Part shown: positions 4,441-58,345 of the stretch, in pieces | Layout: the number at the start of each line of letters is the position of its first letter | Position numbering within the stretch: the first letter of the stretch is position 1 | IMG/VR virus record: IMGVR_UViG_3300032562_000003 | Coordinates: 194,860 to 258,859 of that record | DNA: 64,000 nt | Direction: 5' to 3' (one strand) | Program-made: the position numbers and the translations under genes | Notes under the pieces: model-generated | Seen by the model: only the letters and a program-made list of their open reading frames with translations | What the model was told of the DNA's origin: nothing | Databases searched by the model: none

Positions 4441-4444
4441 AGCA

Positions 4445-4511
4445 TAAATAGATGTGAGTCGCGGGACTGCAATCCCCACTCACTCTAATGCTAGAAGGAG
4501 CTATCAGCATG
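4445..4511 (+). promoter_or_regulatory. Late promoter plus conserved structured leader of HNH gene (copy 1)
   Basis: TAAATA then GTGAGTCGC...CCCACTCACTCTAA...ATCAGCATG. GTGAGT pairs with ACTCAC. A near-identical layout occurs at 15265-15334 (-). Confidence 0.65.
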
Positions 4512-5171
4512 TCTATTTATCGTAAAATTTACGAACAGAATTTTGGTCCCATACCCAAAGACGGTGACGGAAGAAGTTGCGATGTTCATCATATAGATGG
4601 TAACCGCAATAATAATGTACCGGAAAATTTAATCGCATTGTCTATACAAGATCATTACGATATTCATTATCAGCAAGGAGATTATGGTGCATGTTGGCTC
4701 ATTTCAAGAAAGCTACGGTTGACGCCAGAGGAACTATCAGACCTCGCCAAATTAACCGGCGCCAACCGCATCGCAAACGGCACACATCACTTTTTAAAAA
4801 GGCCAGATGGGTCATCGTTAGGAAAAGACAGTGTACTCAGACAAACTGAAAACGGGACGAATGCTTTCTCTGGAGGAGAAGTTCAAAGAAAATCTAACGC
4901 TAAGCGAGTGAGGGAAGGAACTCACCATTTTCTTAGTGGTGATATACAAAGAAGAACTCAACAAAGGTTGGTGGAGAACGGGACTCATCATTTAATGGGG
5001 AACGGAGAATTTCAACGAAATGTTCAGAAAACATTGTTAGAGAATGGAACTCACCACTTTCTTACGAATCATCCAAATAAAATTCAGGTAACTTGTCCGC
5101 ATTGCAACAAAACTGGCGGAAAAACTAACATGCATCGATACCATTTCGATAAGTGTAGGGTCTTAAAATAA
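4509..5171 (+). CDS. HNH homing endonuclease with GTHHF repeats and C-terminal zinc-binding motif
   Basis: DVHHIDGNRNNNVPENL, five GT[HN]x[FL] repeats, and CPHC...HFDKC. ATG at 4509 follows AAGGAG. Confidence 0.88.
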   Translation: MSIYRKIYEQNFGPIPKDGDGRSCDVHHIDGNRNNNVPENLIALSIQDHYDIHYQQGDYGACWLISRKLRLTPEELSDLAKLTGANRIANGTHHFLKRPDGSSLGKDSVLRQTENGTNAFSGGEVQRKSNAKRVREGTHHFLSGDIQRRTQQRLVENGTHHLMGNGEFQRNVQKTLLENGTHHFLTNHPNKIQVTCPHCNKTGGKTNMHRYHFDKCRVLK

Positions 5172-5203
5172 TATGACATACTGTAATTAGTGTAAATATT
5201 GTT

Positions 5204-7744
5204 ATGGCAATTAGAGAAGTATTCTACTCCGGTTCCAAACCCAATGTCCATCCAAGAGAAAAATTTGCTGAATCACTAGAAGATGCTAGGAATCAGTGTA
5301 CGACTGAGCATTTTTGGATTATCAACGAGTTTTGTGACTACCGTAAATTTGATTGGGACTTTGATTTCGAGCTATTACCTGACGAAGATATTTGGGCAGA
5401 GGCACACGACAATGTATGGCCTAGCCAACATCAAAAAGATAGTGGTACATGGCTGTGTCCTAAGGTAGCCGGTGATTATACTATCTATCGAACCGATGTT
5501 CCCCCAATTCAACGCAAGAATGAAATCAATGATTTTTGGATTATAGATCCGGCCCTGGATAAATCTAGGTTTGACTTTTCTTGGCACCCAGATCCTACGT
5601 CTCCTCCATACATATATCAATTCGGTACTCTGCTCGATGAAAACGACGGACCCAGATACGTCACTCCCTATAATGACGGAACCATAGTACATCTAGAACG
5701 CAAGGAGGTCATACTAGAAGACCTAGAGTTTTCGAAGTACTACATCACTACTACATTGGAAGATTTAATCAACGACCACACTAATGAAATCTTTTGGGCA
5801 TTGAATCCTGAAATTGATTATTCTGGGTTTGACTTTAAATGGGTCCCTGACAGTAAGAACGTATATCACATAAATGCATTTGGTACGAAAGACAATATAA
5901 ACTCCCAGACTTACTTTGTTAATGGTAAGATGTGGGCACGTGGTTATCGGGACATTAACTACATTGAGGATAAGGTACTAGATGTACGAACCAAGATCGA
6001 TATTTTCTTTGTCGATAAAGGAAATCCTCAGGCACAAGAACGCTTTCAGCAATTATCTGAGCGTATGGGCAACGTAACTAAAACTAGATATCTGAACAGC
6101 TGGGTTGACACGATCAATCGTTGTGTGACTAAATCAACTACCAATCTATGTTGGATTCTCAATAGTGAATTAGACTATTCGTCATTTGAGTTTGATTTCT
6201 ATCCTAGCCCATGGCAGATGAACTTAGTTCATGTGTTTGGAACTCAGTGGTCACACTGGGGAACAACCTTTATGGTTAACAAAAATACATTTGCTGATGA
6301 TACCAAATATATAAAAGTCATTGAGCATTTGCCTAATATAAATTTTGTAAAACGATCACCTGCTAAGGCAGTTGATTGTCTTTATGCTATAGTAATCATC
6401 GACCATGGTAACGGTGTTGATACAGTAAAAGATGATCTACTCAGTAAAAATCTGAGCGAAAGAAACATCATTGCTGTGAAATATGATACCAATTATCTAA
6501 AAACATTCAAGGAGGTACTCAGTAAATTAGATGTCAATCGTGAACATTATGTATGGATTTGTAGTAGCGTGTGTGATTATAGCAGATTTGATTTTAGCTA
6601 TATCTGCGATCCGTACACCAAAGAACAACTCCACGTCTTCCCGAGCGGTAATCAAAAATTAGGAGACACGTTTCTAGTAAACGTCAACAAGCTGCGCAAA
6701 TTGATAGCAGATATGCATCGTCTAGAAGACTATGAAAAGATTAATTATAATCAACATCAAGTTGTCTCAAGATTGATGACACCCACAACTATCGAAGGTG
6801 CATATTTTCCAAATGAAACACATATGGATTATGCTAGAAATTATGAATGGGATTTTCCTTATGTAACTCTAGTAACTGAAGAAAACTGGGATATGGATCC
6901 TGAAATTGATCCCGAACCTATGTGTCTTTGGTCACCCGAACAGAAAGCAATCATTATTTCTAGTACAGGTGCAACTAGAGTTACGATTCCTCGCGAGGCT
7001 AAAAACTATGTCAAAAGTGAACTGTATGATTACCCGTATATAAAGCGAGCAAAAAAACTAACCAAATCTAAACCGATGGACATAGTGTATCTCAGTAACG
7101 GTGAAGCCGGGGCCGAAAAAAACTGGGAGCATCTACTTCAAATTACTAAAAACATACCAAATAGGGTAGTCAGAGTGGATGGAGTTAATGGTCGAGTTGC
7201 TGCATATCATGCTGCTGCCGAAGCCAGCGAGACACCATGGTTATTTACGGTATTCGCTAAGTTACACATCAATTCTAATTTTGATTGGTCATGGCAACCA
7301 GATCGAATGCAAGCACCTAAGCATTATATCTTTCATGCGAAGAATCCGGTCAATGGATTGATCTACGGTCACCAAGCGATGATCGCGTATAATAAGCAAT
7401 TAGTGCTAGAGAATGACGGTTATGGACTAGACTTTACGTTGGATGACCTGCACGAAGTTGTTCCACTCATGTCCGGTACTGCAAACTATAACACTGATCC
7501 GTTCTCTACTTGGCGTACCGCATTCCGTGAAGTGGTCAAATTGAAGGCCGAAGATACCGACATTGCCCGAGAGCGATTAGAAGCTTGGCTTACTAAAGCT
7601 GAAGGTGATTTTGCAGAATATAGCATCAAGGGTGCAAAAGACGCAGAAGCCTATTACGATGAAGTTGATGGCGATTTTGATGCACTGCGATTGAGCTACG
7701 AGTGGGAATGGTTAAAATCACGCTTCGTGCAAAAATACGGTTGA
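5204..7744 (+). CDS. Large multi-module glycosyltransferase-like protein
   Basis: Recurring F[DE]FxWxPD/FDFSY modules. C-terminal GT-A-like region (DIVYLSNGE...RVDGVNGRVAAYHAAAEASETPW). Lies in a sugar-enzyme neighbourhood. Confidence 0.55.
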   Translation: MAIREVFYSGSKPNVHPREKFAESLEDARNQCTTEHFWIINEFCDYRKFDWDFDFELLPDEDIWAEAHDNVWPSQHQKDSGTWLCPKVAGDYTIYRTDVPPIQRKNEINDFWIIDPALDKSRFDFSWHPDPTSPPYIYQFGTLLDENDGPRYVTPYNDGTIVHLERKEVILEDLEFSKYYITTTLEDLINDHTNEIFWALNPEIDYSGFDFKWVPDSKNVYHINAFGTKDNINSQTYFVNGKMWARGYRDINYIEDKVLDVRTKIDIFFVDKGNPQAQERFQQLSERMGNVTKTRYLNSWVDTINRCVTKSTTNLCWILNSELDYSSFEFDFYPSPWQMNLVHVFGTQWSHWGTTFMVNKNTFADDTKYIKVIEHLPNINFVKRSPAKAVDCLYAIVIIDHGNGVDTVKDDLLSKNLSERNIIAVKYDTNYLKTFKEVLSKLDVNREHYVWICSSVCDYSRFDFSYICDPYTKEQLHVFPSGNQKLGDTFLVNVNKLRKLIADMHRLEDYEKINYNQHQVVSRLMTPTTIEGAYFPNETHMDYARNYEWDFPYVTLVTEENWDMDPEIDPEPMCLWSPEQKAIIISSTGATRVTIPREAKNYVKSELYDYPYIKRAKKLTKSKPMDIVYLSNGEAGAEKNWEHLLQITKNIPNRVVRVDGVNGRVAAYHAAAEASETPWLFTVFAKLHINSNFDWSWQPDRMQAPKHYIFHAKNPVNGLIYGHQAMIAYNKQLVLENDGYGLDFTLDDLHEVVPLMSGTANYNTDPFSTWRTAFREVVKLKAEDTDIARERLEAWLTKAEGDFAEYSIKGAKDAEAYYDEVDGDFDALRLSYEWEWLKSRFVQKYG

Positions 7745-7770
7745 CATGCAATGTCATATATGATTAAATA
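7741..7770 (+). promoter_or_regulatory. Promoter for tmRNA (sigma70-like overlapping late TAAATA)
   Basis: TTGACA (7741), 17-nt spacer, TTAAAT. TAAATA at 7765. Confidence 0.5.
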
Positions 7771-7775
7771 GTATT

Positions 7776-8105
7776 TGTTCGTTGATACGGACTTAAAACC
7801 GGGGAAGACAGGGGTGCGATTCCCCTCGCCTCCACCAGTAAACACACGATAACAGGACGCTGGCTCTGTGAAGCGGGATATCGGGGTAGCTGCCGAGAAG
7901 ACGGGGAGAGCATCGTGTGTTTTCTTATGGGGGCGTATAGTATCGATTCACGGCTAGTAGGAAAGTGGAGAACACGGTAAGAAACGACCGTCAATCAGTT
8001 CAAATTACTAAATGCAAACGAAAATGATGCATATGAAGGCCTTGCGTTAGCCGCATAAGTCTTTTGGGCTTTGCTAGTTGAGCCTCGAAACAGAATCAAC
8101 TAGCA
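7776..8105 (+). ncRNA. ssrA: Circularly permuted two-piece tmRNA, tag ANENDAYEGLALAA
   Basis: Acceptor piece comes first with T-arm GGGGTGCGATTCCCC and CGCCTCCACCA ending at 7837. Coding piece starts GGGGGCG at 7929 and pairs with CGCCTCC including the G3:U alanine determinant. Tag ORF 8014-8058 ends ALAA-stop. Terminal GCTAGTTGA/TCAACTAGC stem. Outer ends are approximate. Confidence 0.9.
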
Positions 8106-8178
8106 CCTATAAAACCTTTAAATATGATATATCGTCCTATAGGTCATAAATAATTTTGACATGTTAGGAGAACAAATC

Positions 8179-14398: not shown

Positions 14399-14636
14399 CG
14401 ACATTAACATAAATCAGTGGTTCATGGACCGAGAATTAAGTCATACCCCTGAACATTTTATAAGATCAAGCACTCCTTTTACTATCGAGTCGCGCATGTG
14501 GATTTTGGAAAGCCTTCAAGGCAGATTTTCTACACATTACCCCAACACATCGACCTATATTATGAATAGAATAGCACTTTGTCCATCGTTTGAAGATCCA
14601 CAAGAAGCAGTGTTTTACGAACTCAAGTGGGGCTAG
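14385..14636 (+). CDS. Small hypothetical protein, FxxExDxxxFxL[RK]W-like family
   Basis: GTG start. C-terminus FEDPQEAVFYELKWG. Confidence 0.6.
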   Translation: MKTIDDININQWFMDRELSHTPEHFIRSSTPFTIESRMWILESLQGRFSTHYPNTSTYIMNRIALCPSFEDPQEAVFYELKWG

Positions 14637-15267
14637 GTCTTACTAGTTCCCACCCTCCAGTAGCGTTAAGTCCTTTGTTATTTACAATACGACTAATTGC
14701 ACCGGACTTGAGATTATAACATGTCCTTAATTGATAATTCGTCATTGATACTACCTCCCCGGTCATACGATTTTTCCAAGTTCTAACAGTATGGTCATAC
14801 TGCGGATGTTTTTCTTTTTTCTTGGGGTCATTAACAAAATGATGAGTCCCGGCAGCAAGTCTGTTTAATTGTCGTTTACTGGCAGCTTCCCTGTCCAACC
14901 AATTATGTGTTCCATTAAGAATGCGGTCTCTGTTTAGTTGCGCTTGGTGCTTGTTGGGCCCAACCCAAGGATGCTTGCCCGTTTTAACTAGCTTGTTAGC
15001 ATTTTTTGTTGCGAGGGCTACTAGCTCATCGGGAAGTAAGTTGATCCTACTTGACATTTTTACACAAGCTGCCCAATCACCCTGTGAATAATGAATGTTG
15101 TAATGTTCTTGTATAGATACACATTTCAAGTTAGCAGGATTATTATTGGAATGATTTCCGTCTATATGATGTATTTCATATGACCGACCCGACTCTTCCT
15201 TAGGAATTGGACCGTAGTGATGTTCATAGATATTACGGTACTTGTTTGTACCACAATAAATACACAT
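14623..15267 (-). CDS. HNH homing endonuclease, paralog of 4509-5171
   Basis: YGPIPKEESGRSYEIHHIDGNHSNNNPANL, three G[TK]H[HNP][FW] repeats and a different C-terminal region. Inserted antisense to its neighbours. Confidence 0.88.
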   Translation of the reverse strand: MCIYCGTNKYRNIYEHHYGPIPKEESGRSYEIHHIDGNHSNNNPANLKCVSIQEHYNIHYSQGDWAACVKMSSRINLLPDELVALATKNANKLVKTGKHPWVGPNKHQAQLNRDRILNGTHNWLDREAASKRQLNRLAAGTHHFVNDPKKKEKHPQYDHTVRTWKNRMTGEVVSMTNYQLRTCYNLKSGAISRIVNNKGLNATGGWELVRPSPT

Positions 15268-15334
15268 GCTGATTGCTACTTATAAGCTGTTAGAGTGAGT
15301 GGGTACTAGTAATACTGCGACTCACACTTATTTA
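15265..15334 (-). promoter_or_regulatory. Late promoter plus conserved structured leader of HNH gene (copy 2)
   Basis: Reverse complement reads TAAATA-AGT-GTGAGTCGC-AGTATTACTAGTA-CCCACTCACTCTAA-...-AATCAGCATG. Confidence 0.65.
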
Positions 15335-15392
15335 TCTTTTTTATACCAACACACCCTACTCACTAAATACTTTTAGCAAAGGAGAATTAATA

Positions 15393-16408: not shown

Positions 16409-16869
16409 AACTCAGTATTGCAGCGGACCCCAACGGTGGAATAGGATATAAAAACAGATTGCCCTGGATTAAACTTCAGGGCGATTTGCCAAGATTTAAG
16501 TATTTAACCGATAACCAAACCGTAATTATGGGAAGAAACACCTGGGATAGTCTTCCTATAAAACCGTTGTACAATAGGCACAATATAGTAGTTTCAAGTC
16601 AAACGTTTACCATGCCTGAAAAATCGGAATGCATTACATACGCTGCCCTAATAAAAAACATGTCATCATTTGATGACGCATGGCTCATCGGAGGTGCTCA
16701 GCTTGTAAATGCATGTTGGGATTACGTAACCGAAGTTTATTTGTCTAAGACCTTTGCCCAATACGATTGTGATAAATTCATTGATTTGTTATACTTAACA
16801 GATCATTATTATATATTAGACAGCGATGTATTTCCTGACCATGAGTATCAAATTTGGAAGCGTAAATGA
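16405..16869 (+). CDS. folA: Dihydrofolate reductase
   Basis: GGIGYKNRLPW, IMGRNTWDSLP, LIGGAQ and CDKF. Directly upstream of thyA. Confidence 0.93.
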   Translation: MKLSIAADPNGGIGYKNRLPWIKLQGDLPRFKYLTDNQTVIMGRNTWDSLPIKPLYNRHNIVVSSQTFTMPEKSECITYAALIKNMSSFDDAWLIGGAQLVNACWDYVTEVYLSKTFAQYDCDKFIDLLYLTDHYYILDSDVFPDHEYQIWKRK

Positions 16870-17759
16870 AAGAATACTTAAACCTATTACAGGACATTTT
16901 AGATAATGGTGAATTACGAAATGACCGCACTGGTGTAGGCACGATCAGTGTTTTCGGGCGCCAACTTCGCTTTGACTTGTCAAAAGGATTTCCGGCAGTA
17001 ACGACAAAGAAACTTGCGTGGAACGCATGTAAGTCTGAATTACTTTGGTTTTTAGAAGGAAGTAATGATGAACGAAGGTTATGTGAGATTCTACACGATA
17101 CCAGAGAGTCAGGGTATAACACGATCTGGACAGGAAATGCTCAAGCAACTTACTGGGCAGATAAAAAGAGACACGTCGGAGACCTTGGACGAGTATACGG
17201 AGTCCAGTGGCGGCACTGGAGAACACCGCCGGATTACATCTACGAACACGGAGACTTGCATGTCTCAAGTGGTCCAATTGCAGAAGTTGACCAAATAAAG
17301 AATCTAATCGAAGGCATCAAGAAAGACCCCAATGGTCGTCGCCACATCCTATCGGCGTGGAACGTAGGTGAATTAGATCAAATGGCACTTCCTCCGTGTC
17401 ACGTTATGAGCCAGTACTATGTCAGTACGGGCAGAAAGCTAAGCTGTCATATGTACCAAAGGAGTGTGGATGTCTTTTTAGGCCTTCCCTTTAACATCGC
17501 AAGTTACGCTCTACTAACTAGCATGATTGCGCATGTATGTGATCTGGAAGTAGGAGAGTTGATAATCTCTACTGGTGATACTCATATCTATCAAAATCAT
17601 GTGGAACAAGTTAAGGAGCAGTTGTTAAGAGAACCGTATGCTTCTCCCATTCTTTATCTGAATCCAGATGTAAAAGATATTGACAAATTTACAATGGATG
17701 ATATAGTGTTAGATGACTACATCAGCCACAGTACCATAAAGGCCGTTATGGCTGTATGA
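16866..17759 (+). CDS. thyA: Thymidylate synthase
   Basis: DRTGVGT, GRVYGVQWR, MALPPCH and YQRSVDVFLGLPFNIASY. Confidence 0.97.
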   Translation: MKEYLNLLQDILDNGELRNDRTGVGTISVFGRQLRFDLSKGFPAVTTKKLAWNACKSELLWFLEGSNDERRLCEILHDTRESGYNTIWTGNAQATYWADKKRHVGDLGRVYGVQWRHWRTPPDYIYEHGDLHVSSGPIAEVDQIKNLIEGIKKDPNGRRHILSAWNVGELDQMALPPCHVMSQYYVSTGRKLSCHMYQRSVDVFLGLPFNIASYALLTSMIAHVCDLEVGELIISTGDTHIYQNHVEQVKEQLLREPYASPILYLNPDVKDIDKFTMDDIVLDDYISHSTIKAVMAV

Positions 17760-24270: not shown

Positions 24271-24291
24271 TATATTATACTAAATAATATC

Positions 24292-25839
24292 ATGAGCAAT
24301 CAACCAACACTAATAAAAGATCCATATAAGAAGACGGTCTTCAAGAATAAAAAAGAACTTGAGGACTTCATGAAGTGTTGTGATCCTGAAACCGGATATC
24401 TATACTTTATGGATAACTTTTTCTACATTCAACATCCTACTAAAGGTAGTATGTTATATCACCCGTGGCCTTATCAAGAAAGATTGATAGAAACATACCA
24501 CAAGTATAGATTCTCTATATCGCTAATGCCTAGACAGTCAGGTAAGTCAACATCCGCTGCTGGTTACCTACTTTGGTATGCAATGTTCGTTCCTGACTCT
24601 ACGATTCTTATTGCAGCACACAAATATACTGGTGCACAAGAAATCATGCAGAGAATAAGGTATGCGTATGAAAACTGTCCAGATCACATAAAGGCAGGAG
24701 TCACTACATACAATAAGGGCTCTTTAGATTTTGAAAACGGTTCTCGTATTGTATCCGCCACTACTACTGAAAACACCGGTCGTGGTATGTCTATCACGCT
24801 GCTATATCTTGACGAATTTGCGTTCGTTAGACCTAGCATTGCTAAAGAATTTTGGACATCCATTACTCCTACGCTAGCAACTGGTGGTAAGGCAATCATC
24901 ACGTCAACGCCAAACTCAGACGAAGACCAATTCGCGTTGATTTGGAAGGGTGCAAATAAAACGGAAGATGAGTTCGGTAATACGACTGAGTTAGGTGTAA
25001 ACGGATTCAGAGCATATCGAGCTTATTGGAAAGAGCAGCCAGGAAGAGATGAGAAATGGGCAAACGAGATCCGCGCCCAGTTAGGTGATGATCGTTTTGG
25101 TCGAGAAATAGATTGTAACTTCATCATTGCGGATGAAACCTTAATAAATCCAAATACACTGTTGATGTTAGATGGCATAGAACCTATAACTAGAATGGGA
25201 CAAGTTCGCTGGTATAAGACACCAGAAAAGGGAAAGTTGTATGTAGTTGCATTGGACCCCTCATTGGGTACTGGTGGAGATCCGGCTGCTATGCAAATAT
25301 TTGAAGCCAGTACGACTACTCAAATAGGTGAGTGGAAGCATAACAAAACTGATATTCCCAGTCAGATTAAGCTAATGGCACAGATCACCAAATACATAGC
25401 TGAATGCACTGGTGAGCCCAACAACATTTATTATTCTGTGGAAAATAACTCTATTGGTGAAGCGTCATTGATCTCACTGGCAGAATACGGAGAAGCCAAC
25501 ATTCAGGGTACGTTTATCAGTGAACCAGGTAAGAAACGTAAAGGATTCAACACTAGCCAAAAGCCCAAATTAGCAGCGTGTGCAAAATTCAAGACACTGT
25601 TAGAATCAAAAAAGATGACAATATATAGCCGATCGCTGATCAGCGAACTTAAGGCTTTTGTCGCAAACGGGGGCAGTTATGCTGCTAAGATCGGCGATAC
25701 CGATGATTTAGTTATGTCATCCCTGTTAGCAGTTAGAATGATGCAACAACTAGCGGATTTTCATGGTGATCTGGAATCTCAAATTCGTGACCATGACGAG
25801 TTTGTTGCTCCGCTTCCATTCTTTGCAATCTTTGGCTAA
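24292..25839 (+). CDS. terL: Terminase large subunit (T4 gp17-like)
   Basis: MPRQSGKS Walker A, LYLDEFAF Walker B, ITSTPN, nuclease ALDPSLGTGGD and DDLVMS. Confidence 0.95.
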   Translation: MSNQPTLIKDPYKKTVFKNKKELEDFMKCCDPETGYLYFMDNFFYIQHPTKGSMLYHPWPYQERLIETYHKYRFSISLMPRQSGKSTSAAGYLLWYAMFVPDSTILIAAHKYTGAQEIMQRIRYAYENCPDHIKAGVTTYNKGSLDFENGSRIVSATTTENTGRGMSITLLYLDEFAFVRPSIAKEFWTSITPTLATGGKAIITSTPNSDEDQFALIWKGANKTEDEFGNTTELGVNGFRAYRAYWKEQPGRDEKWANEIRAQLGDDRFGREIDCNFIIADETLINPNTLLMLDGIEPITRMGQVRWYKTPEKGKLYVVALDPSLGTGGDPAAMQIFEASTTTQIGEWKHNKTDIPSQIKLMAQITKYIAECTGEPNNIYYSVENNSIGEASLISLAEYGEANIQGTFISEPGKKRKGFNTSQKPKLAACAKFKTLLESKKMTIYSRSLISELKAFVANGGSYAAKIGDTDDLVMSSLLAVRMMQQLADFHGDLESQIRDHDEFVAPLPFFAIFG

Positions 25840-25857
25840 GTTGGCATAAATATCATT

Positions 25858-27717
25858 ATGGCCACAGATTCAGAATCCTTTAACCGCGATTTGTACGACT
25901 TACTTAAAGTGAGAGGGTATAAACCTGTACCGCTCGATTCAAAAAACCAACGTGTTCCTGCATCGCAAAGTGCAGATGTTATGGAATTTACGTTTGTCAA
26001 GGATGACAAAGAGTATGGTAAAGCTTGGGTAAGTATCGATGATGTACAAAATGTCATTGTGTATTATGATAGTGAACAACAAGATAGTCCCAATAATATA
26101 ACACCGGGAGTCGAATACGATGATACCTGGACAGGGTTCTTAAAGAACCTTAAGACATGGGCACAACGTAGACAGCTTAGCTTCGAATTATCAAACAAAG
26201 ATCGCTTGGGCGACGACATGAGACAACGGGAATATTACAAGATGAAAGAAAAAGTTTCAGAAGGCTACTACCCGATGGGTAAGAAGGCCAGCTACAATGA
26301 CGCAGTACCAAACGTAAAGATCATCCTACAGCACAATCGCAATATCGAAGAAGGTGAACAGCGCTATCGCAACGTCGCTCGCATCTATCTAGAAAACGTC
26401 GATGGCGAAAGATTCTTAGCACCTACAAACAAGCCAGGTGTCGCACGAGTGTATGCACGTCATATTGCTGAAGGTGGTCTGCCTAATGATGAGCGCTGGA
26501 ACCACATCAAGGGACTATGCGAAGAATACAACAAGATGGCAGGCTTTGTGAGAGCTACCCGTAATAAGCAATTTAACGAATCAGCACAAGCTTTAGTTAA
26601 TGAGGGCTTAAATCATTATAATAAGTTGCGCGAAAACCTAAACAAAATGACTGGTCATCGCGGATACACTGCATATTTCGAATCATGGACTCCTACTCTT
26701 ATGGAAAACGAAAACGATTCGTCTTCTATAAATGAACTTTTCGTACAAGAAACTACTGACCCTCGCATCGAATCAGTAATGCCTATCCTTGCTCGCCTTC
26801 AGAAGAAGGTAAATGAAATGAGCGAAGTCAACGAACTAGCAGAGTGGGCTGATGGAATCGCTAACGAGCATCTGGAAGAAGTTTCTGATCCGTACAAGAA
26901 AGACGAAATGAAAGATTTCAAGACCCAACAGCGTCAAGGATTAAAATCAACCAATCCGGATCTCAAAAATGTAGAGGATTTGGATGATATTGAAGAAGCT
27001 ACTGGTACTGAAAAGATGTTAAGAAAGATACCAGGATTCAAGAGATATCAAGCTGGTGAAAAGTCTAAAGACAATAAAACTCTTGCTAATTTAATGTTAC
27101 ACGGAGAAATAGAAGGTGATTCTGCGACTGATCCTAAGGACATTAATTTAGGTAAGTCTGCGGCCCGTGCGGCACAAAGATTTGACAAAATCGCTAAAGG
27201 TAAAAAGCCATTCAGTAATGAAGAAGTAGAAGAAGCTTTAGAACCTTGGATGGGTAAGGACCTTGATACGCCTGCTTACCTTCGTAAGAAGAAGTATGAC
27301 GATGCAAAGAAGGACGCAGAATTGGGCGGACCAAAACTTCGTAGAGTTAAGGACAATCCAGAAGAAGTAAAAGAAACTGCTTACGAAAAGGATCTAGCAG
27401 ATCACGAACCTAGAAAGGTTTCTGGAGTTTATGGTGCAAAGTCTAAGTCCTTTAACAAGAAGTTTAAAAATCAAGCGGCACAAGACAAGTTTTTTGATCA
27501 TCCAGATAACGAGGGCAACTACGAAATCCACTACGTGTCCAAAGTAGATGAAACGGTTGAAGAAGACTTAGATGCAAATCAAAAGCGCGCCGGACAACTT
27601 GGACCTACAGAAAAGGTCAAGAATAATAATATTGGCAAACTAGTAGGCGCAAATGAATCGACTGAATTCCCAGAAGAATTACAGCGTATTATGGACATTG
27701 CCCGTTTTAGACTATAA
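25858..27717 (+). CDS. Large hypothetical late protein with acidic modular C-terminal half
   Basis: 619-aa ORF after TAAATA at 25847; many [LIV]xE sites between short modules. Confidence 0.65.
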   Translation: MATDSESFNRDLYDLLKVRGYKPVPLDSKNQRVPASQSADVMEFTFVKDDKEYGKAWVSIDDVQNVIVYYDSEQQDSPNNITPGVEYDDTWTGFLKNLKTWAQRRQLSFELSNKDRLGDDMRQREYYKMKEKVSEGYYPMGKKASYNDAVPNVKIILQHNRNIEEGEQRYRNVARIYLENVDGERFLAPTNKPGVARVYARHIAEGGLPNDERWNHIKGLCEEYNKMAGFVRATRNKQFNESAQALVNEGLNHYNKLRENLNKMTGHRGYTAYFESWTPTLMENENDSSSINELFVQETTDPRIESVMPILARLQKKVNEMSEVNELAEWADGIANEHLEEVSDPYKKDEMKDFKTQQRQGLKSTNPDLKNVEDLDDIEEATGTEKMLRKIPGFKRYQAGEKSKDNKTLANLMLHGEIEGDSATDPKDINLGKSAARAAQRFDKIAKGKKPFSNEEVEEALEPWMGKDLDTPAYLRKKKYDDAKKDAELGGPKLRRVKDNPEEVKETAYEKDLADHEPRKVSGVYGAKSKSFNKKFKNQAAQDKFFDHPDNEGNYEIHYVSKVDETVEEDLDANQKRAGQLGPTEKVKNNNIGKLVGANESTEFPEELQRIMDIARFRL

Positions 27718-27875: not shown

Positions 27876-28856
27876 ATGGCTAGTCTAGCAGAAATCCGTG
27901 CGCGGTTAACGGCACAAGAAAATCGCAGTCAGACCAAGGCTTCTGGCACTCAATCAGATAACGCAATCTATCCTTTCTGGAATATTGACGAAGGAGCAAC
28001 TGCTTCTATTCGTCTGTTGCCAGACGGCAATCCTACTAACGAATTCTTTTGGGTAGAACGTCAAGTTATCAAGCTTCCGTTCAATGGCGTTAAGGGTGAT
28101 TCCAACATGAAGCAAGTTACTGTACAAGTTCCTTGCGTCGAGATGTATGGCGATAATTGCCCGGTTCTCGCAGAAGTTCGTCCGTGGTACAAAGACGACA
28201 CTCTTAAGGACCTTGCTAACAAGTATTGGAAGAAGCGTTCATATCTTTATCAAGGCTTTGTTCGCCAAAATCCACTAGGTGATGATCAAACTCCAGCGAA
28301 CCCAATTCGTCGCTTCATCATCTCCCCGCAAATTCAGACTATTATCAAGGCATCTTTGATGGATCCGGAACTTGATGAATTGCCAACCGACTACGTTCAC
28401 GGTCTTGACTTCAACATCAAGAAGACTTCTAAGGGCGGTTATGCAGACTATTCAACTTCCACTTGGTCTCGTAAGGAGTCACCGCTTACGGAAGCCGAGC
28501 AAGCAGCGATTGATTCGTTTGGGTTGTACAATCTCGCTGACTTCTTGCCAAAGAAGCCAAGCGAAGCCGAACTTCGGGTCATTAAGGAGATGTTTGAAGC
28601 ATCAGTTGATGGACGCCCGTATGACACTGATAAGTGGGGCGCATATTATCGTCCGTATGGCATTGAAGCTCCGTCCAGCACCGCACAAGCACAAACTGCT
28701 TCTGCTGCACCTAGTGCACCGACTACGGTAGCATCTGCGCCAATCGATGAGCCTCCTTTCGAAGTAGATCAACCAATCGTTGTTCCTACTGCACCAACGA
28801 GCGATAAGGCACAGGACATTCTAAAGATGATCCGCGAAAGACAGAATAAGGCCTAA
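27876..28856 (+). CDS. Single-stranded DNA-binding protein (T4 gp32-like)
   Basis: IRLLPDGN, VPCVEMYGDNCPV, YWKKRSY, GYADYSTS and a low-complexity tail. Upstream of uvsX. Confidence 0.85.
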   Translation: MASLAEIRARLTAQENRSQTKASGTQSDNAIYPFWNIDEGATASIRLLPDGNPTNEFFWVERQVIKLPFNGVKGDSNMKQVTVQVPCVEMYGDNCPVLAEVRPWYKDDTLKDLANKYWKKRSYLYQGFVRQNPLGDDQTPANPIRRFIISPQIQTIIKASLMDPELDELPTDYVHGLDFNIKKTSKGGYADYSTSTWSRKESPLTEAEQAAIDSFGLYNLADFLPKKPSEAELRVIKEMFEASVDGRPYDTDKWGAYYRPYGIEAPSSTAQAQTASAAPSAPTTVASAPIDEPPFEVDQPIVVPTAPTSDKAQDILKMIRERQNKA

Positions 28857-28861
28857 TTAGG

Positions 28862-28887
28862 TTTGGGGAGGAGAAATCCTCCCCAAA
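28862..28887 (+). terminator. 11-bp GAAA-tetraloop hairpin (terminator or stabilising stem)
   Basis: TTTGGGGAGGA-GAAA-TCCTCCCCAAA; lacks a clear U-tract. Confidence 0.6.
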
Positions 28888-28908
28888 ATTCTGGCTAAGG
28901 AGAATACC

Positions 28909-29139
28909 ATGACCAATTCAGATGATAGATACCGTGCAATAAAGCAAGGTAAAAAACTGTTGGAGGAACTGTGTGATCCAGGCAAAACTCCAAGAGTTCC
29001 GAGTATAGTAAGAGACCGGGCGCGGAGCGTACTAAGACATTTTCCGAATGACTATGAATTAGACCAAATCGCAGTGAATAGTCCCGAATTACTCGAAAAA
29101 TTATCAGTTAATGATAAGATGAAACAGATTGTAAGATAG
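28909..29139 (+). CDS. Hypothetical protein
   Basis: 76-aa ORF with AAGGAG RBS. Confidence 0.6.
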   Translation: MTNSDDRYRAIKQGKKLLEELCDPGKTPRVPSIVRDRARSVLRHFPNDYELDQIAVNSPELLEKLSVNDKMKQIVR

Positions 29140-29148
29140 GATATATAC

Positions 29149-30222
29149 TTGACAACTAAACCTTTCGACCTCAGCAAGTTCCGTAAAGACATTACTAAGG
29201 CCATCGATGGTCTCAGCATTGGATTTAATGATCCCACTGATTGGATCAGCACAGGAAACTATGCACTTAACTACCGCATCAGCAGCGAATTTGACAAGGG
29301 AATTCCTCTTGGAAAAGTAACCGTATTTGCTGGTGAATCAGGAGCCGGCAAATCATATATTTGTTCCGGAAATATTGTACGACATGCCCAAGAACAGGGC
29401 ATTTACGTAGTTCTAATTGATAGCGAAAACGCACTAGACGAATCATGGCTACAGGCACTTGGTGTAGACACTAGTGCAGAAAAGCTACTAAAGCTTAATA
29501 TGGCAATGATTGATGATGTTGCAAAGACGATCAGCGAGTTCATGAAGGGCTATAAGGGAATGAGCGAAACGGATCGCCCTAAGGTTCTTTTCGTTATCGA
29601 CTCACTTGGTATGTTGCTTACTCCTACTGATGTAAATCAGTTTGAGGCAGGCGATATGAAGGGTGATATGGGTCGTAAGCCTAAGGCTCTTACATCTTTG
29701 GTACGTAATTGTGTTAACATGTTCGGTTCATGTAATGTAGGATTAGTGGCCACAAATCACACATATGCATCACAAGATATGTTTGATCCTGATGACAAGA
29801 TTTCAGGTGGACAAGGCTTTATCTATGCGTCTTCTATCGTAGTTGCGATGAAGAAGCTAAAGCTTAAAGAGGACGAGGACGGAAACAAGATTTCACAAGT
29901 GCGTGGCATTCGTGCAGCTTGTAAGGTCATGAAAACTCGTTATGCAAAGCCTTTTGAAAACGTACAAGTTAAGATTCCGTATGACACAGGAATGAGTCCG
30001 TATTCGGGATTAACTGAGATGTTTGAAGGTATGGAGATTTTCAAGAAAGAAGGAAACTCTCTCGTCTACACTAAGCTTGACGGGTCTATCATTAAGAAGT
30101 TCCGAAAGGGATGGGAACGAAATGATGACGGTTGCCTAGATACTGTTATGGAAGAATTCCACAAAAGGGCAGATACTGCACTAAGTACTGTCGCTAGCGA
30201 GGAAGAGGAAGTAGCAGAATGA
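29149..30222 (+). CDS. uvsX: RecA-like recombinase (T4 UvsX-like)
   Basis: FAGESGAGKS, IDSENA, VIDSLGML, TNHTY and SGGQG. TTG start. Confidence 0.92.
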   Translation: MTTKPFDLSKFRKDITKAIDGLSIGFNDPTDWISTGNYALNYRISSEFDKGIPLGKVTVFAGESGAGKSYICSGNIVRHAQEQGIYVVLIDSENALDESWLQALGVDTSAEKLLKLNMAMIDDVAKTISEFMKGYKGMSETDRPKVLFVIDSLGMLLTPTDVNQFEAGDMKGDMGRKPKALTSLVRNCVNMFGSCNVGLVATNHTYASQDMFDPDDKISGGQGFIYASSIVVAMKKLKLKEDEDGNKISQVRGIRAACKVMKTRYAKPFENVQVKIPYDTGMSPYSGLTEMFEGMEIFKKEGNSLVYTKLDGSIIKKFRKGWERNDDGCLDTVMEEFHKRADTALSTVASEEEEVAE

Positions 30223-32234: not shown

Positions 32235-33440
32235 GTGAATTACGAATTCCCTGTAATTAAGAATATCTCAGAGGTGCTTCCTGCGATTAAGGATGCTCCT
32301 GAGTTCGTTGTGGCTGAGCGTGACGGCTATACCGTCATCAACTACAACGTAATGATGTCAGATACCTTTCCCACCATTAACGTCGCTGGCGGTTCTGCTA
32401 AGATGCGTGCAGAACGCTCTTTGCACAATATGCTGCGGCGTGAGTGTCGCGGTATCATCTTCTGTTCGAAGACCGGAGACCTTCTGCGGCGTCCCCTGCA
32501 TAAATTTTTCAATGTCAACGAAAGAGAAGAAACCCAAGACCATGTTTTGGATCTGTCTCGTCCGCACGTTATTCTTGAAAAGCTTGACGGCTCTATGCTA
32601 GTTCCTTTCATGCTCAACGACGAAGTTCGTTGGGGTACTAAGATGGGTCTGACTGACGTTGCTGCTCCTGTTGAGGAATTCGTTAAAAATAATCCTAAGT
32701 ACGAGGAATTCGCTCGCGTTTATCTAACTCAATCTTTCATCACCCCTATCTTTGAATGGTGTTCGCGTAAGCAACGCATCGTCATCGATTACGGGAGCAA
32801 AGATCACTTAGTCCTTATCGCTCTCCGTTTTAATGACACAGGTGAGTATGTTAAGTATGATAAAATGACCTTTATTGCTAAGAACTGGAATCTCCCAGTC
32901 GTAAAGGCTTTCGAGCCTGCTACGGATATGAATGAATTTATGGCTTATGTTGCTGGTCTGAAAGATATGGAAGGCTTTGTGATTCGTTTCGATGACGGTC
33001 ACATGGTTAAGGCTAAGTGTGACTGGTACGTTCAAATTCATAAGGCTAAGGAAGCCATTCTGCAAGATCGTAATATCGTGGAAATGATCCTGAGCAACAC
33101 CCTCGATGATGTTAAGGCTCATCTTCTTACTGAAGATCGAGTTCGCCTGGAAGAATTTGAGGATAAGGTTGTCACTCGCATCAAGTATCTGGCTCGTGAA
33201 CTGCATGACAATGTGGCTCATATTCGTGCCCGAAACGTTGATCGTAAGAACTTTGCGCTGAACGAATCTCAAAATTTTGATTCGCTCATGAAAGCAGCGA
33301 TCTTCTCGCTGTTTGACTGTTGTACTATTGAGTCTGCCCAGGAACATATTACTAAAACTGTGGCTATCAAACTGTCGAGCAACAAGAGCTATGACCTGAT
33401 TAAGGACGTTTGGTTTAAAGGAATTAAACATAATGACTAA
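32235..33440 (+). CDS. rnlA: RNA ligase 1 (T4 RnlA family)
   Basis: RECRGIIF, LHKFFNVNE, EKLDGS (motif I), EGFVI (motif IV) and VKAKCDWY (motif V). Confidence 0.9.
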   Translation: MNYEFPVIKNISEVLPAIKDAPEFVVAERDGYTVINYNVMMSDTFPTINVAGGSAKMRAERSLHNMLRRECRGIIFCSKTGDLLRRPLHKFFNVNEREETQDHVLDLSRPHVILEKLDGSMLVPFMLNDEVRWGTKMGLTDVAAPVEEFVKNNPKYEEFARVYLTQSFITPIFEWCSRKQRIVIDYGSKDHLVLIALRFNDTGEYVKYDKMTFIAKNWNLPVVKAFEPATDMNEFMAYVAGLKDMEGFVIRFDDGHMVKAKCDWYVQIHKAKEAILQDRNIVEMILSNTLDDVKAHLLTEDRVRLEEFEDKVVTRIKYLARELHDNVAHIRARNVDRKNFALNESQNFDSLMKAAIFSLFDCCTIESAQEHITKTVAIKLSSNKSYDLIKDVWFKGIKHND

Positions 33441-36812: not shown

Positions 36813-37838
36813 TTGAAAACAGCAACAATAGAAATTAAGGACGAAGTAAACGTTAAAATTTTAGGACTTGAGTTAGATGTAAGGCGCGCTCTCATGAAAA
36901 AATTTGAGTACGAGAAGCCCGGTGCCAGATATCAACCAGCAGTTCGATTGGGTAGATGGAATGGTAAGATCAGCTATTTTTCTTTAGCAGGGAGTACCTA
37001 TCTAAATCTACTGGATGAAATCATTCCGATACTAATCGATTACGGCTATGACATAGTACTAGACGACAAGAGAAAAAATCACTTAGACCTAAAGTTTGAC
37101 CTGATAAACGAGAATACTTTTGCTAACATATGCTGGCCCGCCGGACATGAACGTGAAGGTCAACCTATAATTCTGCGTGATTATCAAGTGGAAATCGTCA
37201 ATAACTTTTTAGCCAATCCACAGTCACTTCAAGAAATAGCAACAGGCGCTGGCAAGACATTAATGACAGCCGCATTGTCTAAAAGTATTGAGCCATATGG
37301 TCGATCTATCGTAGTTGTTCCCAACAAGTCGTTGGTAGTACAAACCGAAGCAGATTACAAAAATCTTCAACTTGAGGTAGGCGTGTACTTTGGTGATCGA
37401 AAGGATTACGGTAAAACACATACCATCTGTACATGGCAATCACTGAACAATTTGCTCAAGGTTAAAGCTGAACAAGATCCTAACAAGGATCCTGATATGG
37501 AAGACTTTTTCTTTGATGATGTTGTTTGTGTCATGGTTGATGAATGTTTTCACGGAGAATCAGTGGTGCTAACCCCGGTTGGATATGTACCCATCAAGGA
37601 CATTAAAGCCGGAGATAAAGTAATCAATTATTGTGAACAGTCCGGAACCTTCAAGGAAGATACAGTGGTAAAACAACAGCACAATCTTACTGTGTCGTCC
37701 ACTGAAAAAATGTATGAGATGGAATTTGATAACGGACGTGTAATTAGGGTTACTGGAAATCATCAATTTCTAACAAATCTAGGCTGGTGCCGGGCTGACG
37801 AACTTACTGAAAATCACGAAATAGTAAATAAAACATAA
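36813..37838 (+). CDS. uvsW: UvsW-like SF2 helicase, N-terminal part fused to N-intein
   Basis: LRDYQ Q-motif, IATGAGKT Walker A, TWQSL, then VDE-CFHGESVVLT at the intein start. Confidence 0.9.
   Translation: MKTATIEIKDEVNVKILGLELDVRRALMKKFEYEKPGARYQPAVRLGRWNGKISYFSLAGSTYLNLLDEIIPILIDYGYDIVLDDKRKNHLDLKFDLINENTFANICWPAGHEREGQPIILRDYQVEIVNNFLANPQSLQEIATGAGKTLMTAALSKSIEPYGRSIVVVPNKSLVVQTEADYKNLQLEVGVYFGDRKDYGKTHTICTWQSLNNLLKVKAEQDPNKDPDMEDFFFDDVVCVMVDECFHGESVVLTPVGYVPIKDIKAGDKVINYCEQSGTFKEDTVVKQQHNLTVSSTEKMYEMEFDNGRVIRVTGNHQFLTNLGWCRADELTENHEIVNKT
37545..37835 (+). other. Split intein N-fragment (97 aa)
   Basis: Block A CFHGESVVLTPVGYVPIKDIKAGDKV and block B IRVTGNHQFLT (TxxH). Ends WCRADELTENHEIVNKT at a stop codon. 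Confidence 0.88.
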
Positions 37839-37865
37839 ATACATATGGCTAAGGCAGGAGTATTC

Positions 37866-38786
37866 ATGAAAATTACATATGAACAATGGAAAGATCGGTT
37901 AAACAAGCGACTAGCAGAACATAACCAACAGGTAAGGGTCGTTACTTTTGGAAAATCAACACTAGAATTATCAACCGGCGAGATATTAATACAGCCCGAG
38001 TTTAATAATTTTAAAAAGAGGGTAATGAATTCCAAGACTGATCTTTGGGTGAAGAATATGGATTTGCTTCTATCCGGATTAATATCTGATCGGGAAGTCA
38101 AGGCTAAGCTTGCTGCAATTGGTGGCGAAGCCGTTCATAAATTACATCCTGAACTTAGTAGTCGCAATTTAAATACAGGTGTGCCGTGGAATAAAGGGAA
38201 AACAGGACTACAAACTTCTTGGGCGAAGGGTTTGACTAAACAAACCGACAGTCGGGTTGCTGCTAGAGTAAATAGCGGGGAAGCAAACGGTATGTATGGT
38301 GTAAAAATGTCTGACCAGGATAAAAAATTCCGATCGGATATAATGAAGGATAAAATTTTATATGGAGACTTTACCCCAAATTCCAACAATAGAAACACGC
38401 ACTGGGAAGCAACGTTTAACAGAAAGAAATATAGATCGAGTTGGGAAGCGTTGTTTCAGTATATGTATCAGGATGCAGCGTATGAAACATTGAGATTAGA
38501 ATACATTATCAACGGTAATCGAAAAATATACATAGTTGATTTTGTTGATTATAAAACCAAACAGGTAGTAGAAGTGAAGCCGACGGAGTTATGCCGAGGT
38601 AAGATATTTGACGCAAAAATGGTTGCCCTTAAAGAGTGGGCAGATCAAAATGGGTTTAGTGTCATTGTCGCAACACGGGAATGGCTATTGAATAATAGCT
38701 GCCCTTCCGACCTCTCTGGATTTGATGAAAAAACCGCAACAAAGATAAGGAAGTTATATGAAGCTAATAAGAAAAACCGAAATTGA
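37866..38786 (+). CDS. Free-standing endonuclease: NUMOD3-like motifs + TnsA-like PD-(D/E)XK domain
   Basis: PWNKGKTG and NGMYGVKMS motifs; YRSSWE...YIVDF...VVEVKP. AGGAG RBS before 37866 and TAAATA at 37836. Confidence 0.78.
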   Translation: MKITYEQWKDRLNKRLAEHNQQVRVVTFGKSTLELSTGEILIQPEFNNFKKRVMNSKTDLWVKNMDLLLSGLISDREVKAKLAAIGGEAVHKLHPELSSRNLNTGVPWNKGKTGLQTSWAKGLTKQTDSRVAARVNSGEANGMYGVKMSDQDKKFRSDIMKDKILYGDFTPNSNNRNTHWEATFNRKKYRSSWEALFQYMYQDAAYETLRLEYIINGNRKIYIVDFVDYKTKQVVEVKPTELCRGKIFDAKMVALKEWADQNGFSVIVATREWLLNNSCPSDLSGFDEKTATKIRKLYEANKKNRN

Positions 38787-47657: not shown

Positions 47658-48635
47658 ATGTTTAATATTCTGTCAGTAATTCCGGGAAAAAAGAAGACTA
47701 CCGGTAGTGGCTGGATTAGCTTTAATGCACCGTGCTGTCATCATCGCGGTCATAAAGCAGATAAACGTATGCGCGGCGGAATCAAGTTTATAACAGACGT
47801 TAACTGGTCGTTTCATTGCTTTAACTGCGATTACAAGTGCGGATTTACCTTAGGTAAACAAATTAGTAAGAATCTACGACAATTATTGCTTTGGTGCGGT
47901 GTCGGTGACAGTGAGATTACTAAATGGAATTTTGAGAGCCTTCAGCATCGAGATTTAGTAGACCTATATACGATAAAGAAAAATCTCAAGAAAGTAAGAT
48001 TTAATGAGATACCGCTACCACAAAATGCTATAATGATTGATTCTGCCTGTCCTGAGCATAAACCTTTTATAGACTATCTTTCCACAAGAGGATTTCAACC
48101 AAACGATTATCCATTTTTAATCACTCCTAAAGATGAAGGTAGAAATGCTAATAGAATTATCATTCCATATACTTTCAATAATAAAGTTGTCGGTCATATA
48201 AGCAGATATCTAGATGACAGATTTCCCAAATATATTAAGGAGCAACAACCCGGATTCGTATTTGGCTTCGACTTACAAAAACCAGAATGGGAAGTATGTA
48301 TCGTTGTTGAGGGCATATTTGACGCACTCAGTATCAATGGCTGCGCACTAACTCATGATACTATAAGCGACGAACAAGCAGAGGTTCTTCGTCGCCTTAA
48401 TAAACGTATTATTGTAGTTCCTGATTTGGATAAGACAGGGCTAGCTATATGTGACCGAGCGCTAGATTTGGGTTTTCAGGTGAGTATACCAAATTGGGCC
48501 GAAGGAATAAAAGACACCAATGATGCTGTTAGAAAGTATGGAAGACTTCCTACTCTGCTAAGTATATTGCAAAGCGCAACTACTAGCAAAATCAAGCTTA
48601 AGATGCAACGGAGAACGCTTGACAAAAGAATATAA
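47658..48635 (+). CDS. DNA primase (gp61-like)
   Basis: Zinc domain APCC...HCFNC; TOPRIM VVEGIFDA and PDLDKTG; KDTNDA. Confidence 0.88.
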   Translation: MFNILSVIPGKKKTTGSGWISFNAPCCHHRGHKADKRMRGGIKFITDVNWSFHCFNCDYKCGFTLGKQISKNLRQLLLWCGVGDSEITKWNFESLQHRDLVDLYTIKKNLKKVRFNEIPLPQNAIMIDSACPEHKPFIDYLSTRGFQPNDYPFLITPKDEGRNANRIIIPYTFNNKVVGHISRYLDDRFPKYIKEQQPGFVFGFDLQKPEWEVCIVVEGIFDALSINGCALTHDTISDEQAEVLRRLNKRIIVVPDLDKTGLAICDRALDLGFQVSIPNWAEGIKDTNDAVRKYGRLPTLLSILQSATTSKIKLKMQRRTLDKRI

Positions 48636-53291: not shown

Positions 53292-53309
53292 GTTGCTCTA
53301 AATAACACT

Positions 53310-58260: not shown

Positions 58261-58327
58261 TAAATATAGAAAGAACACTCTGTTGAGAGTTTACGCGGTT
58301 ACCCACCGCGTAGTGGCTAGAACCCAC
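58261..58327 (+). promoter_or_regulatory. Late promoter and three-hairpin leader
   Basis: TAAATA at 58261; ACTCT/AGAGT, TACGCGG/CCGCGTA and GTGG/CCAC stems before AAGGAG. Confidence 0.55.
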
Positions 58328-58345
58328 ACATAAAGGAGAAAACAA

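Follow-up and report, generated by a model that had tools for sequence, protein, structure and literature searches.

The window analysed here, a 64,000-nt stretch of IMG/VR virus record IMGVR_UViG_3300032562_000003 (positions 194,860 to 258,859), contains two HNH homing endonuclease genes, each immediately preceded by a copy of the same short, structured DNA segment (Table 1). Copy 1 starts 3 nt after the stop codon of a carbamoyltransferase gene. An earlier sequence-only reading of the window had described the two segments as a conserved leader of about 65 nt, with an outer stem, an inner stem and a GCT/AGC hairpin over the ribosome binding site (RBS), and had taken it for a candidate new cis-acting RNA travelling with this mobile HNH family, with a role as autoregulatory operator, translational switch or RNA cofactor. 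What that reading saw in the sequence was confirmed by our analysis: both copies lie where it had placed them, all the stems that it named hold up, and each of them shows compensatory changes in homologues. The element extends 12 nt into the ORF, beyond the limits given at that stage, and copy 2 is a weaker example, since its Shine-Dalgarno (SD) sequence is AGUAG and its first inner pair is A.C on the sense strand.

Table 1. Features of the two cassette copies in the window (antisense RNAs, promoter cores and helices are predicted from sequence)
Copy	Positions	Strand	Feature	Basis
1	4444..4520	+	Whole cassette, directly before the HNH ORF	Sequence
1	4444..4450	+	Sense promoter-like ATAAATA (core TAAATA 4445-4450); predicted mRNA start about 6 nt downstream, at or near the first base of the hairpin	Sequence; association of TAAATA with gene starts; spacing statistics
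1	4454..4483	-	Helix H2 (outer and inner stems); on the - strand an 11-bp hairpin with two bulged G, whose complement would form the 5'-terminal hairpin of the HNH mRNA	Folding; covariation (99.2-99.5% paired when read as antisense)
1	4485..4507	-	Helix H1 of the predicted antisense RNA; CUGAU (reverse complement of AUCAG) pairs with UUAG (reverse complement of CUAA), and GCU with AGC; the 6-7 nt loop holds CCUU, complementary to the SD AAGGAG at 4495-4500	Folding; pair counts with an invariant G.U; compensatory UUUAA/AUCAAC double change in two leaders
1	4514..4519	-	Antisense promoter-like core TAAATA (TATTTA on the + strand, codon 2 position 3 to codon 4 position 2 of the HNH ORF), 5 nt before the G of GCUGAU	Sequence; kept in three reading frames; spacing of 5 nt in 113 of 119
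1	4444..4508	-	Predicted antisense RNA of about 65 nt; 5' end near 4508, then H1, H2 and the tail AUCUAUUUAU; 3' end not defined	Inferred from fold, pair counts and spacing
1	4509..5171	+	HNH homing endonuclease gene (220 aa), I-TevIII-like with repeated xGTHHF modules	Pfam HNH_3, E=1.2e-10; phrog_12324 'intron-like DNA endonuclease', E=4.5e-48; 37% identity to I-TevIII-type genes of T-even phages
2	15256..15335	-	Whole cassette, directly before the HNH ORF	Sequence
2	15329..15335	-	Sense promoter-like ATAAATA	Sequence
2	15295..15325	+	Helix H2, read on the strand antisense to this HNH gene	Sequence; covariance model; folding
2	15269..15293	+	Helix H1 of the predicted antisense RNA	Folding (the MFE shows the 5+3 bp H1)
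2	15257..15262	+	Antisense promoter-like core TAAATA, inside codons 2-4 of the HNH ORF	Sequence
2	15268..15335	+	Predicted antisense RNA of about 68 nt, on the same strand as the neighbouring phage genes	Inferred from promoter motif, fold and pair counts
2	14623..15267	-	HNH homing endonuclease gene (214 aa)	Pfam HNH_3, E=9.1e-13

The composite pattern GTGAGTCGC..CCCACTCACTCTAA occurred exactly twice in the window and in none of 100 shuffles. With filters off, a covariance model found only these two copies in the window, with scores of 85.8 and 70.7 bits, the next hit scoring 16 bits. The two proteins are 43% identical over 141 aa, whereas the leader is about 80% identical at the DNA level. 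A match to Rfam and an absence of covariation had been named beforehand as outcomes that would count against the element. No Rfam 15 family (including HEARO/omega RNA and other nuclease-associated RNAs) matched either leader in a scan of the window at the gathering scores, none matched in 7 homologous loci, and none was found at E<=10 in a 201-nt scan of copy 1.

To test for covariation, we searched with the two HNH proteins and obtained 107 viral loci. Most close relatives carry the same leader, with obviously compensatory stems, while the HNH relatives lacking the leader have plain short 5' regions. On a MAFFT alignment of 35 distinct leaders, found through protein homology alone, we considered the outer stem (P1, 6 bp), the inner stem (P2, 4 bp) and the RBS hairpin (P3, 3 bp, whose 3′ arm is the end of AGGAGC) together with a putative closing helix (P0), for a total of 20 pairs: 94% of the cells were paired, and the covariation score was 0.353, versus 0.125 for shuffles and at most 0.08 for slid partners. 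A DNA pattern leaving the stems free (TCTAA..ATCAGCATGNNTATTTA) hit more than 120 viral stretches. Of these leaders, 111 distinct ones were aligned with a sense-strand covariance model, and all 13 sense pairs showed double changes, with 97% of the cells paired. A second scan, keyed only on the commonest hairpin, gave hits almost all of which were followed by the same downstream part. Overall, homologous leaders occur in more than 200 uncultured phage loci, with strong compensatory base changes.

The element is not specific to HNH genes. The ORFs behind the leaders fall into at least 17 N-terminal protein families. Precisely, these are I-TevIII-like HNH_3 proteins (46 distinct proteins), four Seg-like groups (29, 21, 8 and 5 proteins) with matches to PHROG 314 'homing endonuclease' and/or NUMOD3, one protein with a Pfam GIY-YIG hit, one endonuclease VII-like protein, one PD-(D/E)xK-like 'endonuclease', DUF7487/TnsA-like proteins, and several families without any match. 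The group of 21 matched only function-unknown PHROG families and, weakly, NUMOD3. A search for PDB sequence matches of the two large Seg-like families gave none, and their GIY-YIG assignment rests on PHROG 314, NUMOD3 and the N-terminal motif. We therefore considered the cassette as a general head-piece of free-standing homing-endonuclease genes, and rejected the idea of an HNH-specific operator or RNA cofactor; an RNA-cofactor or protein-operator role has no support.

We then considered the promoter context. In the window, TAAATA occurs 48 times on the main coding strand and 17 times on the other. Of the 48 sites, 25 are followed within 40 nt by an ATG opening an ORF of at least 80 codons, versus 8.5+-2.8 for random positions, and several lie exactly 5 nt before the ATG, including the one before the terminase gene. 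The phage has a T4-like replication and recombination set and a contractile tail, and NATAAATA is the late promoter of T4-like cyanophages (PMC2984593). We therefore read TAAATA as the late-type promoter core of this phage, with transcription starting about 6 nt downstream; this is evidence at the motif level only. In the leaders, (A/C)TAAATA lies 55-65 nt before the start codon in all cases, and the sense core is 5 nt before the first base of P1 in 72 of 110, 4 nt in 10 and 3 nt in 25. Sigma70-like matches around the two copies were at the level of the shuffled background for copy 2 and were not positioned consistently.

A late promoter directly before a homing endonuclease gene, together with RNA structure around the SD limiting nuclease expression, is the arrangement of T4 I-TevI, I-TevII, I-TevIII, segB and Aeh1 mobE (PMC2988022), and the HNH proteins of the window are I-TevIII relatives. 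By analogy with the mechanism established for I-TevI and mobE, in transcripts coming from upstream genes AUAAAUA could pair with UAUUUAU just after the AUG (P0), closing a three-way junction and hiding the start region, while late transcripts would start inside P0 and be translated. In favour of this read-through switch, the two heptamers are perfect complements and nearly invariant, P0 is 94.5% paired in the protein-selected leaders, the MFE of copy 1 contains a 9-bp P0, and the RBS opening energy is higher in the read-through than in the late RNA (7.7 versus 5.8 kcal/mol). However, P0 is all A-U and long-range, and its predicted pairing probability is 0.19 (mean) and 0.02 (median). When A and U were swapped in the 8 nt at the promoter (ATAAATA plus the next base), so that they could no longer pair with UAUUUAU, the opening energy was lowered by only 0.4 kcal/mol. 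P0 shows no covariation, UACUUA variants would give A.C with the sense promoter, copy 2 does not form it, and it does not explain the strand asymmetry described below. P0 was the only candidate for a hairpin hiding the SD only in transcripts started upstream of the late promoter, since P3 has 3 bp and lies downstream of the predicted late start. We considered this reading as very unlikely and retained it only as a minor alternative. The T4 and Aeh1 structures differ from the present one in being individual, unrelated hairpins on the sense strand, whose 5′ arm lies upstream of the late start, whereas here a single conserved family is shared by many nuclease families and the fold is best on the antisense strand.

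Several lines of evidence indicate that the selected fold lies on the strand antisense to the nuclease mRNA. Across the 13 sense pairs, the non-Watson-Crick cells were A.C/C.A in 33 cases and G.U in 12, and 10 of these 12 were at the loop-closing pair. Of 38 distinct P1 variants, 13 carried A.C or C.A and none carried G.U; A.C on one strand is G.U on its complement. The middle base of the 5′ bulge C-R-C and the single 3′ bulge base formed G-C in 79 cases, A.C in 23, A-U in 8 and G.U in 0, which, read as antisense, is the classical C-G / U.G / U-A series. These are counts of cells in related sequences that are not independent, hence they overstate the number of events. The hairpin is more stable as antisense (mean MFE of -10.2 versus -8.9 kcal/mol; 65 versus 34 of 100, p=1.5e-6), although copy 2 of the window folds weakly on either strand.

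Folding of the antisense strand gave a second helix, in which GCUGAU (reverse complement of AUCAGC) pairs with UUAG (reverse complement of CUAA) through G.U pairs, one of which is invariant, and stacks on the complement of P3. This helix, H1, explains the two conserved blocks UCUAA and AUCAGC, which cannot pair well on the sense strand (A.C in the middle), and a rare double change, UUUAA with AUCAAC, keeps its outermost pair. On a structure-blind MAFFT alignment of the flipped, protein-selected leaders, the 19-pair antisense structure was 96.5% paired, H2 was 99.5% paired and 15 of the 19 pairs showed double changes. RNAalifold independently recovered H2, including the extra G-Y pair, with no broken cell. 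With an antisense covariance model, 98.9% of 2249 cells were paired over 119 sequences, with double changes at 16 pairs. Two of the three data sets were, however, picked by DNA patterns fixing some of the columns (UCUAA, AUCAGC and TATTTA in one case, the commonest outer stem in the other), alignments made with covariance models lean towards the model, and the model E-values are rough.

TATTTA, just after the start codon, is the reverse complement of the TAAATA core. In 76 distinct leaders chosen only by the hairpin, each of its six positions was kept in 72-76, while the start codon was 5 nt before it in 33, 4 nt in 11 and 3 nt in 16, so that the proteins start with MxIY, MIF or MYL. In three cases a new start codon lies 14 nt upstream and the old one has decayed, yet TATTTA remains. 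We read TATTTA inside the ORF as a nucleotide-level element. The spacing of 5 nt between the antisense core and the G of GCUG matches the commonest sense spacing and the TAAATA-N5-ATG genes of the window, and the rare variant TAAGTA was seen at both the sense and the antisense positions. TATTTA would, however, equally be forced if it merely paired with the sense promoter. The spacer after the sense promoter has almost no C (6 of 497), hence the antisense tail after H2 (ACUUUUAUUUAU) is nearly G-free and U-rich, with an average of 6.9 U in 12 nt. This U-richness is itself forced by the A-rich sense promoter. A simple terminator scan did not call H2 plus tail on either copy, the stem being bulged and 2 non-U bases preceding the U run.

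A purely sense-strand element would be an alternative reading. In this case, the late mRNA would begin with a protective 5′-terminal hairpin (P1/P2), P3 would partly mask the SD, and the conserved single-stranded bases would be a site for a protein, such as the nuclease itself, a phage translational repressor or an RNase. The covariation of P1, P2 and P3, the predicted start falling at the first base of P1 in 72 of 110, the position of the P3 arm at the end of AGGAGC, and the hairpins known in homing-endonuclease leaders of T4 and Aeh1 (PMC2988022) and of GOS phage loci (PMC2677866) are in its favour, and since the sense hairpins are still about 97% Watson-Crick a sense-strand function is not excluded. 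However, this reading does not explain why the mismatches are A.C rather than G.U, why UCUAA and AUCAGC are invariant, or why TATTTA is kept in three reading frames inside unrelated ORFs, and no single protein partner can be common to at least 17 nuclease families. We considered it as unlikely.

We consider as the best explanation, somewhat more likely than not, a compact cassette of about 85 bp heading free-standing homing-endonuclease genes in a clade of uncultured, distantly T4-like myophages and carrying two convergent T4-late-type promoter cores about 70 bp apart. In this view, the upstream core would drive the nuclease mRNA, whose 5′ UTR would start at or near the first base of the large hairpin, and the downstream core, inside the ORF and pointing backwards, would drive an antisense RNA of about 65 nt starting at the G of GCUGAU. 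This RNA would fold into H1 (8-9 bp), with the anti-SD CCUU in its loop, and H2, followed by the U-rich tail, the complement of the sense promoter, as a terminator-like end. Being complementary to the whole late 5′ UTR, it should pair with the nuclease mRNA, probably beginning with loop-loop contacts, and would block ribosome binding and/or trigger duplex cleavage, as IS10 RNA-OUT does, keeping the selfish nuclease at a low dose; the hairpin and tail would also keep antisense transcription out of the neighbouring host gene. The motifs, their spacing, the covarying helices and the strand asymmetry were established directly by our analysis, whereas the firing of both TAAATA cores, the end of the RNA after H2 and the repression of translation were inferred from sequence alone, both promoters being motif calls without transcript evidence of any kind. 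The interpretation given by the sequence-only reading was hence partly supported: the element is conserved, structured, so far unnamed and travels with mobile nuclease genes, but it is not tied to the HNH family, and the idea of translational control survives as cis-antisense control rather than as a sense-strand switch.

A DNA-level cassette without any regulatory RNA was also considered. In this case, a promoter/stem-loop/promoter module would insulate the inserted nuclease gene by stopping transcription in the antisense direction, and its conserved sequence would serve as a recombination handle for swapping nuclease genes, like the PeSL promoter-terminator motifs of T4-like phages (PMC2839356, PMC4122927), which are likewise short conserved cassettes repeated in a phage genome and linked to modular gene shuffling. 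The fusion of the same cassette to many unrelated ORFs in three frames implies recombination at or in it, and several copies occur per genome (at least 4 in the 259-kb contig that matches the window). However, PeSLs carry sigma70-type early or Mot-type middle promoters and plain terminators (PMC4122927), whereas the motif here is of the late type; they are not tied to nuclease genes, do not overlap an ORF start and do not predict an antisense RNA. Pure insulation does not need H1, its invariant G.U or a loop showing the anti-SD, and the RNA-type wobble tolerance argues for a folded transcript. We considered this reading as improbable, although the readings discussed here are not mutually exclusive.

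Among known systems, IS10/Tn10 controls its transposase by RNA-OUT, a stem-loop RNA of about 70 nt made from an outward-facing promoter just inside the 5′ end of the ORF, which converges with the promoter of the gene and is complementary to the 5′ end and ribosome binding region of the mRNA. At the sequence level, the cassette shows both an outward-facing promoter-like core inside the 5′ end of the ORF and a conserved antisense stem-loop fold with a loop complementary to the translation start region. It differs in the element type (homing endonuclease versus transposase), promoter class and sequence, in having two hairpins with the anti-SD in a loop, and in an overlap that stops just before the AUG, and its function is so far only inferred.

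CfrI of cyanophage S-PM2 (Millard et al. 2010, as described in PMC2984593 and PMC5931967) is an experimentally detected antisense RNA of a T4-like phage, whose annotated 5′ end lies 58 nt inside the free-standing homing endonuclease gene F-CphI and which runs back across the 5′ UTR of that gene. CfrI is listed as 198 nt in the record and described as about 225 nt in the paper, and extends into psbA. Its sequence does not match the cassette, the antisense covariance model gave no hit at the psbA/F-CphI/CfrI locus (the best hit in the 30 kb scored 15 bits and lies elsewhere), and the F-CphI leader, by eye, has instead a plain terminator followed by TATAAATA. There is no evidence that CfrI is a shuffled multi-family cassette.

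Dassa et al. 2009 (PMC2677866) described hairpins with TATAAATA and two complementary conserved motifs in the 5′ UTRs of free-standing endonucleases, GIY-YIG and Vsr-like, in 'fractured gene' loci of GOS metagenomes, including freshwater Lake Gatun; as in the cassette, a conserved hairpin plus a late-promoter motif lies upstream of the start codon. They read the hairpin as a sense-strand RBS-sequestering structure and did not report covariation statistics, an antisense promoter or an antisense RNA; this may be partly the same element. In a literature search restricted to open-access papers, we found no paper describing this cassette or an antisense RNA shared by homing-endonuclease families.

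Homing endonucleases are the commonest selfish genes of large phages, and how their expression is kept harmless is known only from a few individual T4 and Aeh1 cases. Here, one conserved cassette seems to do that job for many unrelated nuclease families, and its signature points to antisense RNA control, which has been seen only once next to a phage homing endonuclease (CfrI). If confirmed, it would give a new RNA family for annotation and a simple marker for free-standing nuclease genes in metagenomes, would provide a clear example of how regulatory modules are shuffled between selfish genes, and would offer a compact, portable expression-damping module. It also shows that a covarying leader should be tested on both strands before being called a cis-regulatory mRNA element.

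A further, more tentative possibility, which we consider somewhat less likely than not, is that a single, widely shuffled control module of convergent late promoters and a structured antisense RNA of about 65 nt is shared by homing-endonuclease genes of at least five nuclease folds in freshwater T4-like phages. Since H1 is the same in all cassettes while H2 differs between cassettes of one genome, the RNAs could form a cross-talking or mutually specific network setting the dose of every selfish nuclease in the phage, that is, a general RNA-based 'domestication' system for homing endonucleases. The H2 helices of same-genome cassettes were about as different as those of random pairs (identity of 0.64 versus 0.59), hence there is no clear signal for or against selected orthogonality.

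Other readings were rejected. A pseudoknot between the inner loop and AUCAGC was checked by eye, and the loops are too variable, with 62 variants among 110; a YUNR loop motif was present in only 38 of 110 sense loops and 21 of 110 antisense loops. For kink-turn, tRNA-like minihelix and integron attC-like readings of the bulged hairpin, the defining sequence features were absent by inspection alone. No conserved 3′ end of the cassette was found, TAAATA lying near the stop codon in 22 of 121 versus a background of 6.7%. A blastn search of a leader against 50,697 INPHARED phage records gave no match, and a tblastn search with the HNH protein found only I-TevIII-type genes at about 37% identity. 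Candidate phages of this clade are freshwater T4-like phages of 175-260 kb that carry an alpha-type tmRNA. To assign a host, we searched genome contigs with the DNA pattern and obtained 64 matches, of which only 11 were true cassettes. Nine of these 11 lie on contigs of under 4 kb and the other two on contigs of 9.4 and 42.9 kb, all in MAG bins of mixed taxonomy, and they are probably binned phage DNA.

Upstream of several genes, including the terminase gene, we found TAAATA exactly 5 nt before the ATG (see the table). Precisely, if transcription started 6 nt after the core, these predicted late mRNAs would be leaderless. The same promoter type also precedes a second structured 5′ region, in which a freshwater-2 RNA (RF02980, 65.2 bits) begins 10 nt after a TAAATA and ends at the start of an ORF. 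A further ORF (313 aa), matching PHROG 15427 'endonuclease', is preceded by two TAAATA cores but has no cassette; it may be another mobile nuclease with a different head.

As regards the gene content, the phage carries a T4-like set consisting of thymidylate synthase, gp32-like SSB, UvsX-like recombinase, RnlA-like RNA ligase, helicases and primase, whereas the terminase and the tail sheath belong to less typical PHROG families. The phage is a distant T4 relative of about 259 kb, and the two HNH proteins of the window are 100% identical to those on IMGVR_UViG_3300032562_000003. It also encodes a permuted, alphaproteobacterial-type tmRNA with tag peptide ANENDAYEGLALAA, for which Rfam RF04321 scores 113.8 bits and RF01849 scores 78.2 bits, and which is also called by ARAGORN.

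Genomes carry several cassettes, at least 4 in the window's own phage and up to 3 within 10 kb elsewhere, as in the viral loci L187, L151 (3 copies) and L130 (3 copies), and no two cassettes of one locus share an identical H2 hairpin. In one related phage (locus L017), the cassette and its HNH gene sit inside a cluster of at least 10 tRNA genes, with a tRNA ending about 18 nt before the cassette's promoter.

Features and their coordinates (in the window unless a locus is named)
Feature	Coordinates	Strand
TAAATA exactly 5 nt before an ATG	5193-5206, 24281-24294, 25847-25860, 53299-53312, 54170-54183	+
tmRNA	7737-8149	+
TAAATA before freshwater-2 RNA	58261-58266	
Freshwater-2 RNA	58276-58348	+
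ORF at the end of freshwater-2 RNA	58346-59614	
PHROG 15427 ORF with its upstream TAAATA cores	37825-38786 (cores 37825, 37836; ORF 37845-38786)	+
T4-like gene set	16866-17759, 27876-30222, 32235-33440, 36813-37838, 47658-50028	+
Terminase	24292-25839	
Tail sheath	60389-61765	-
Cassette and HNH gene in tRNA cluster	L017:93-4190	
Cassettes of L187	4551-4635, 5576-5662	
Hairpin inside copy 1 HNH ORF	4908-4925	+
Linker of copy 1	4488-4508	+

Inside the copy 1 HNH ORF there is a terminator-like hairpin, GTGAGGGAAGGAACTCAC followed by CATTTTCTTA, the outer bases of which resemble the cassette's outer stem, although this is probably due to chance. In the same copy, the linker UCUAAUGCU creates an in-frame AUG 21 nt upstream of the HNH start, so that an ORF of 227 aa starting from 4488 was listed. 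This AUG has no Shine-Dalgarno, and about a third of cassettes have U at this position.
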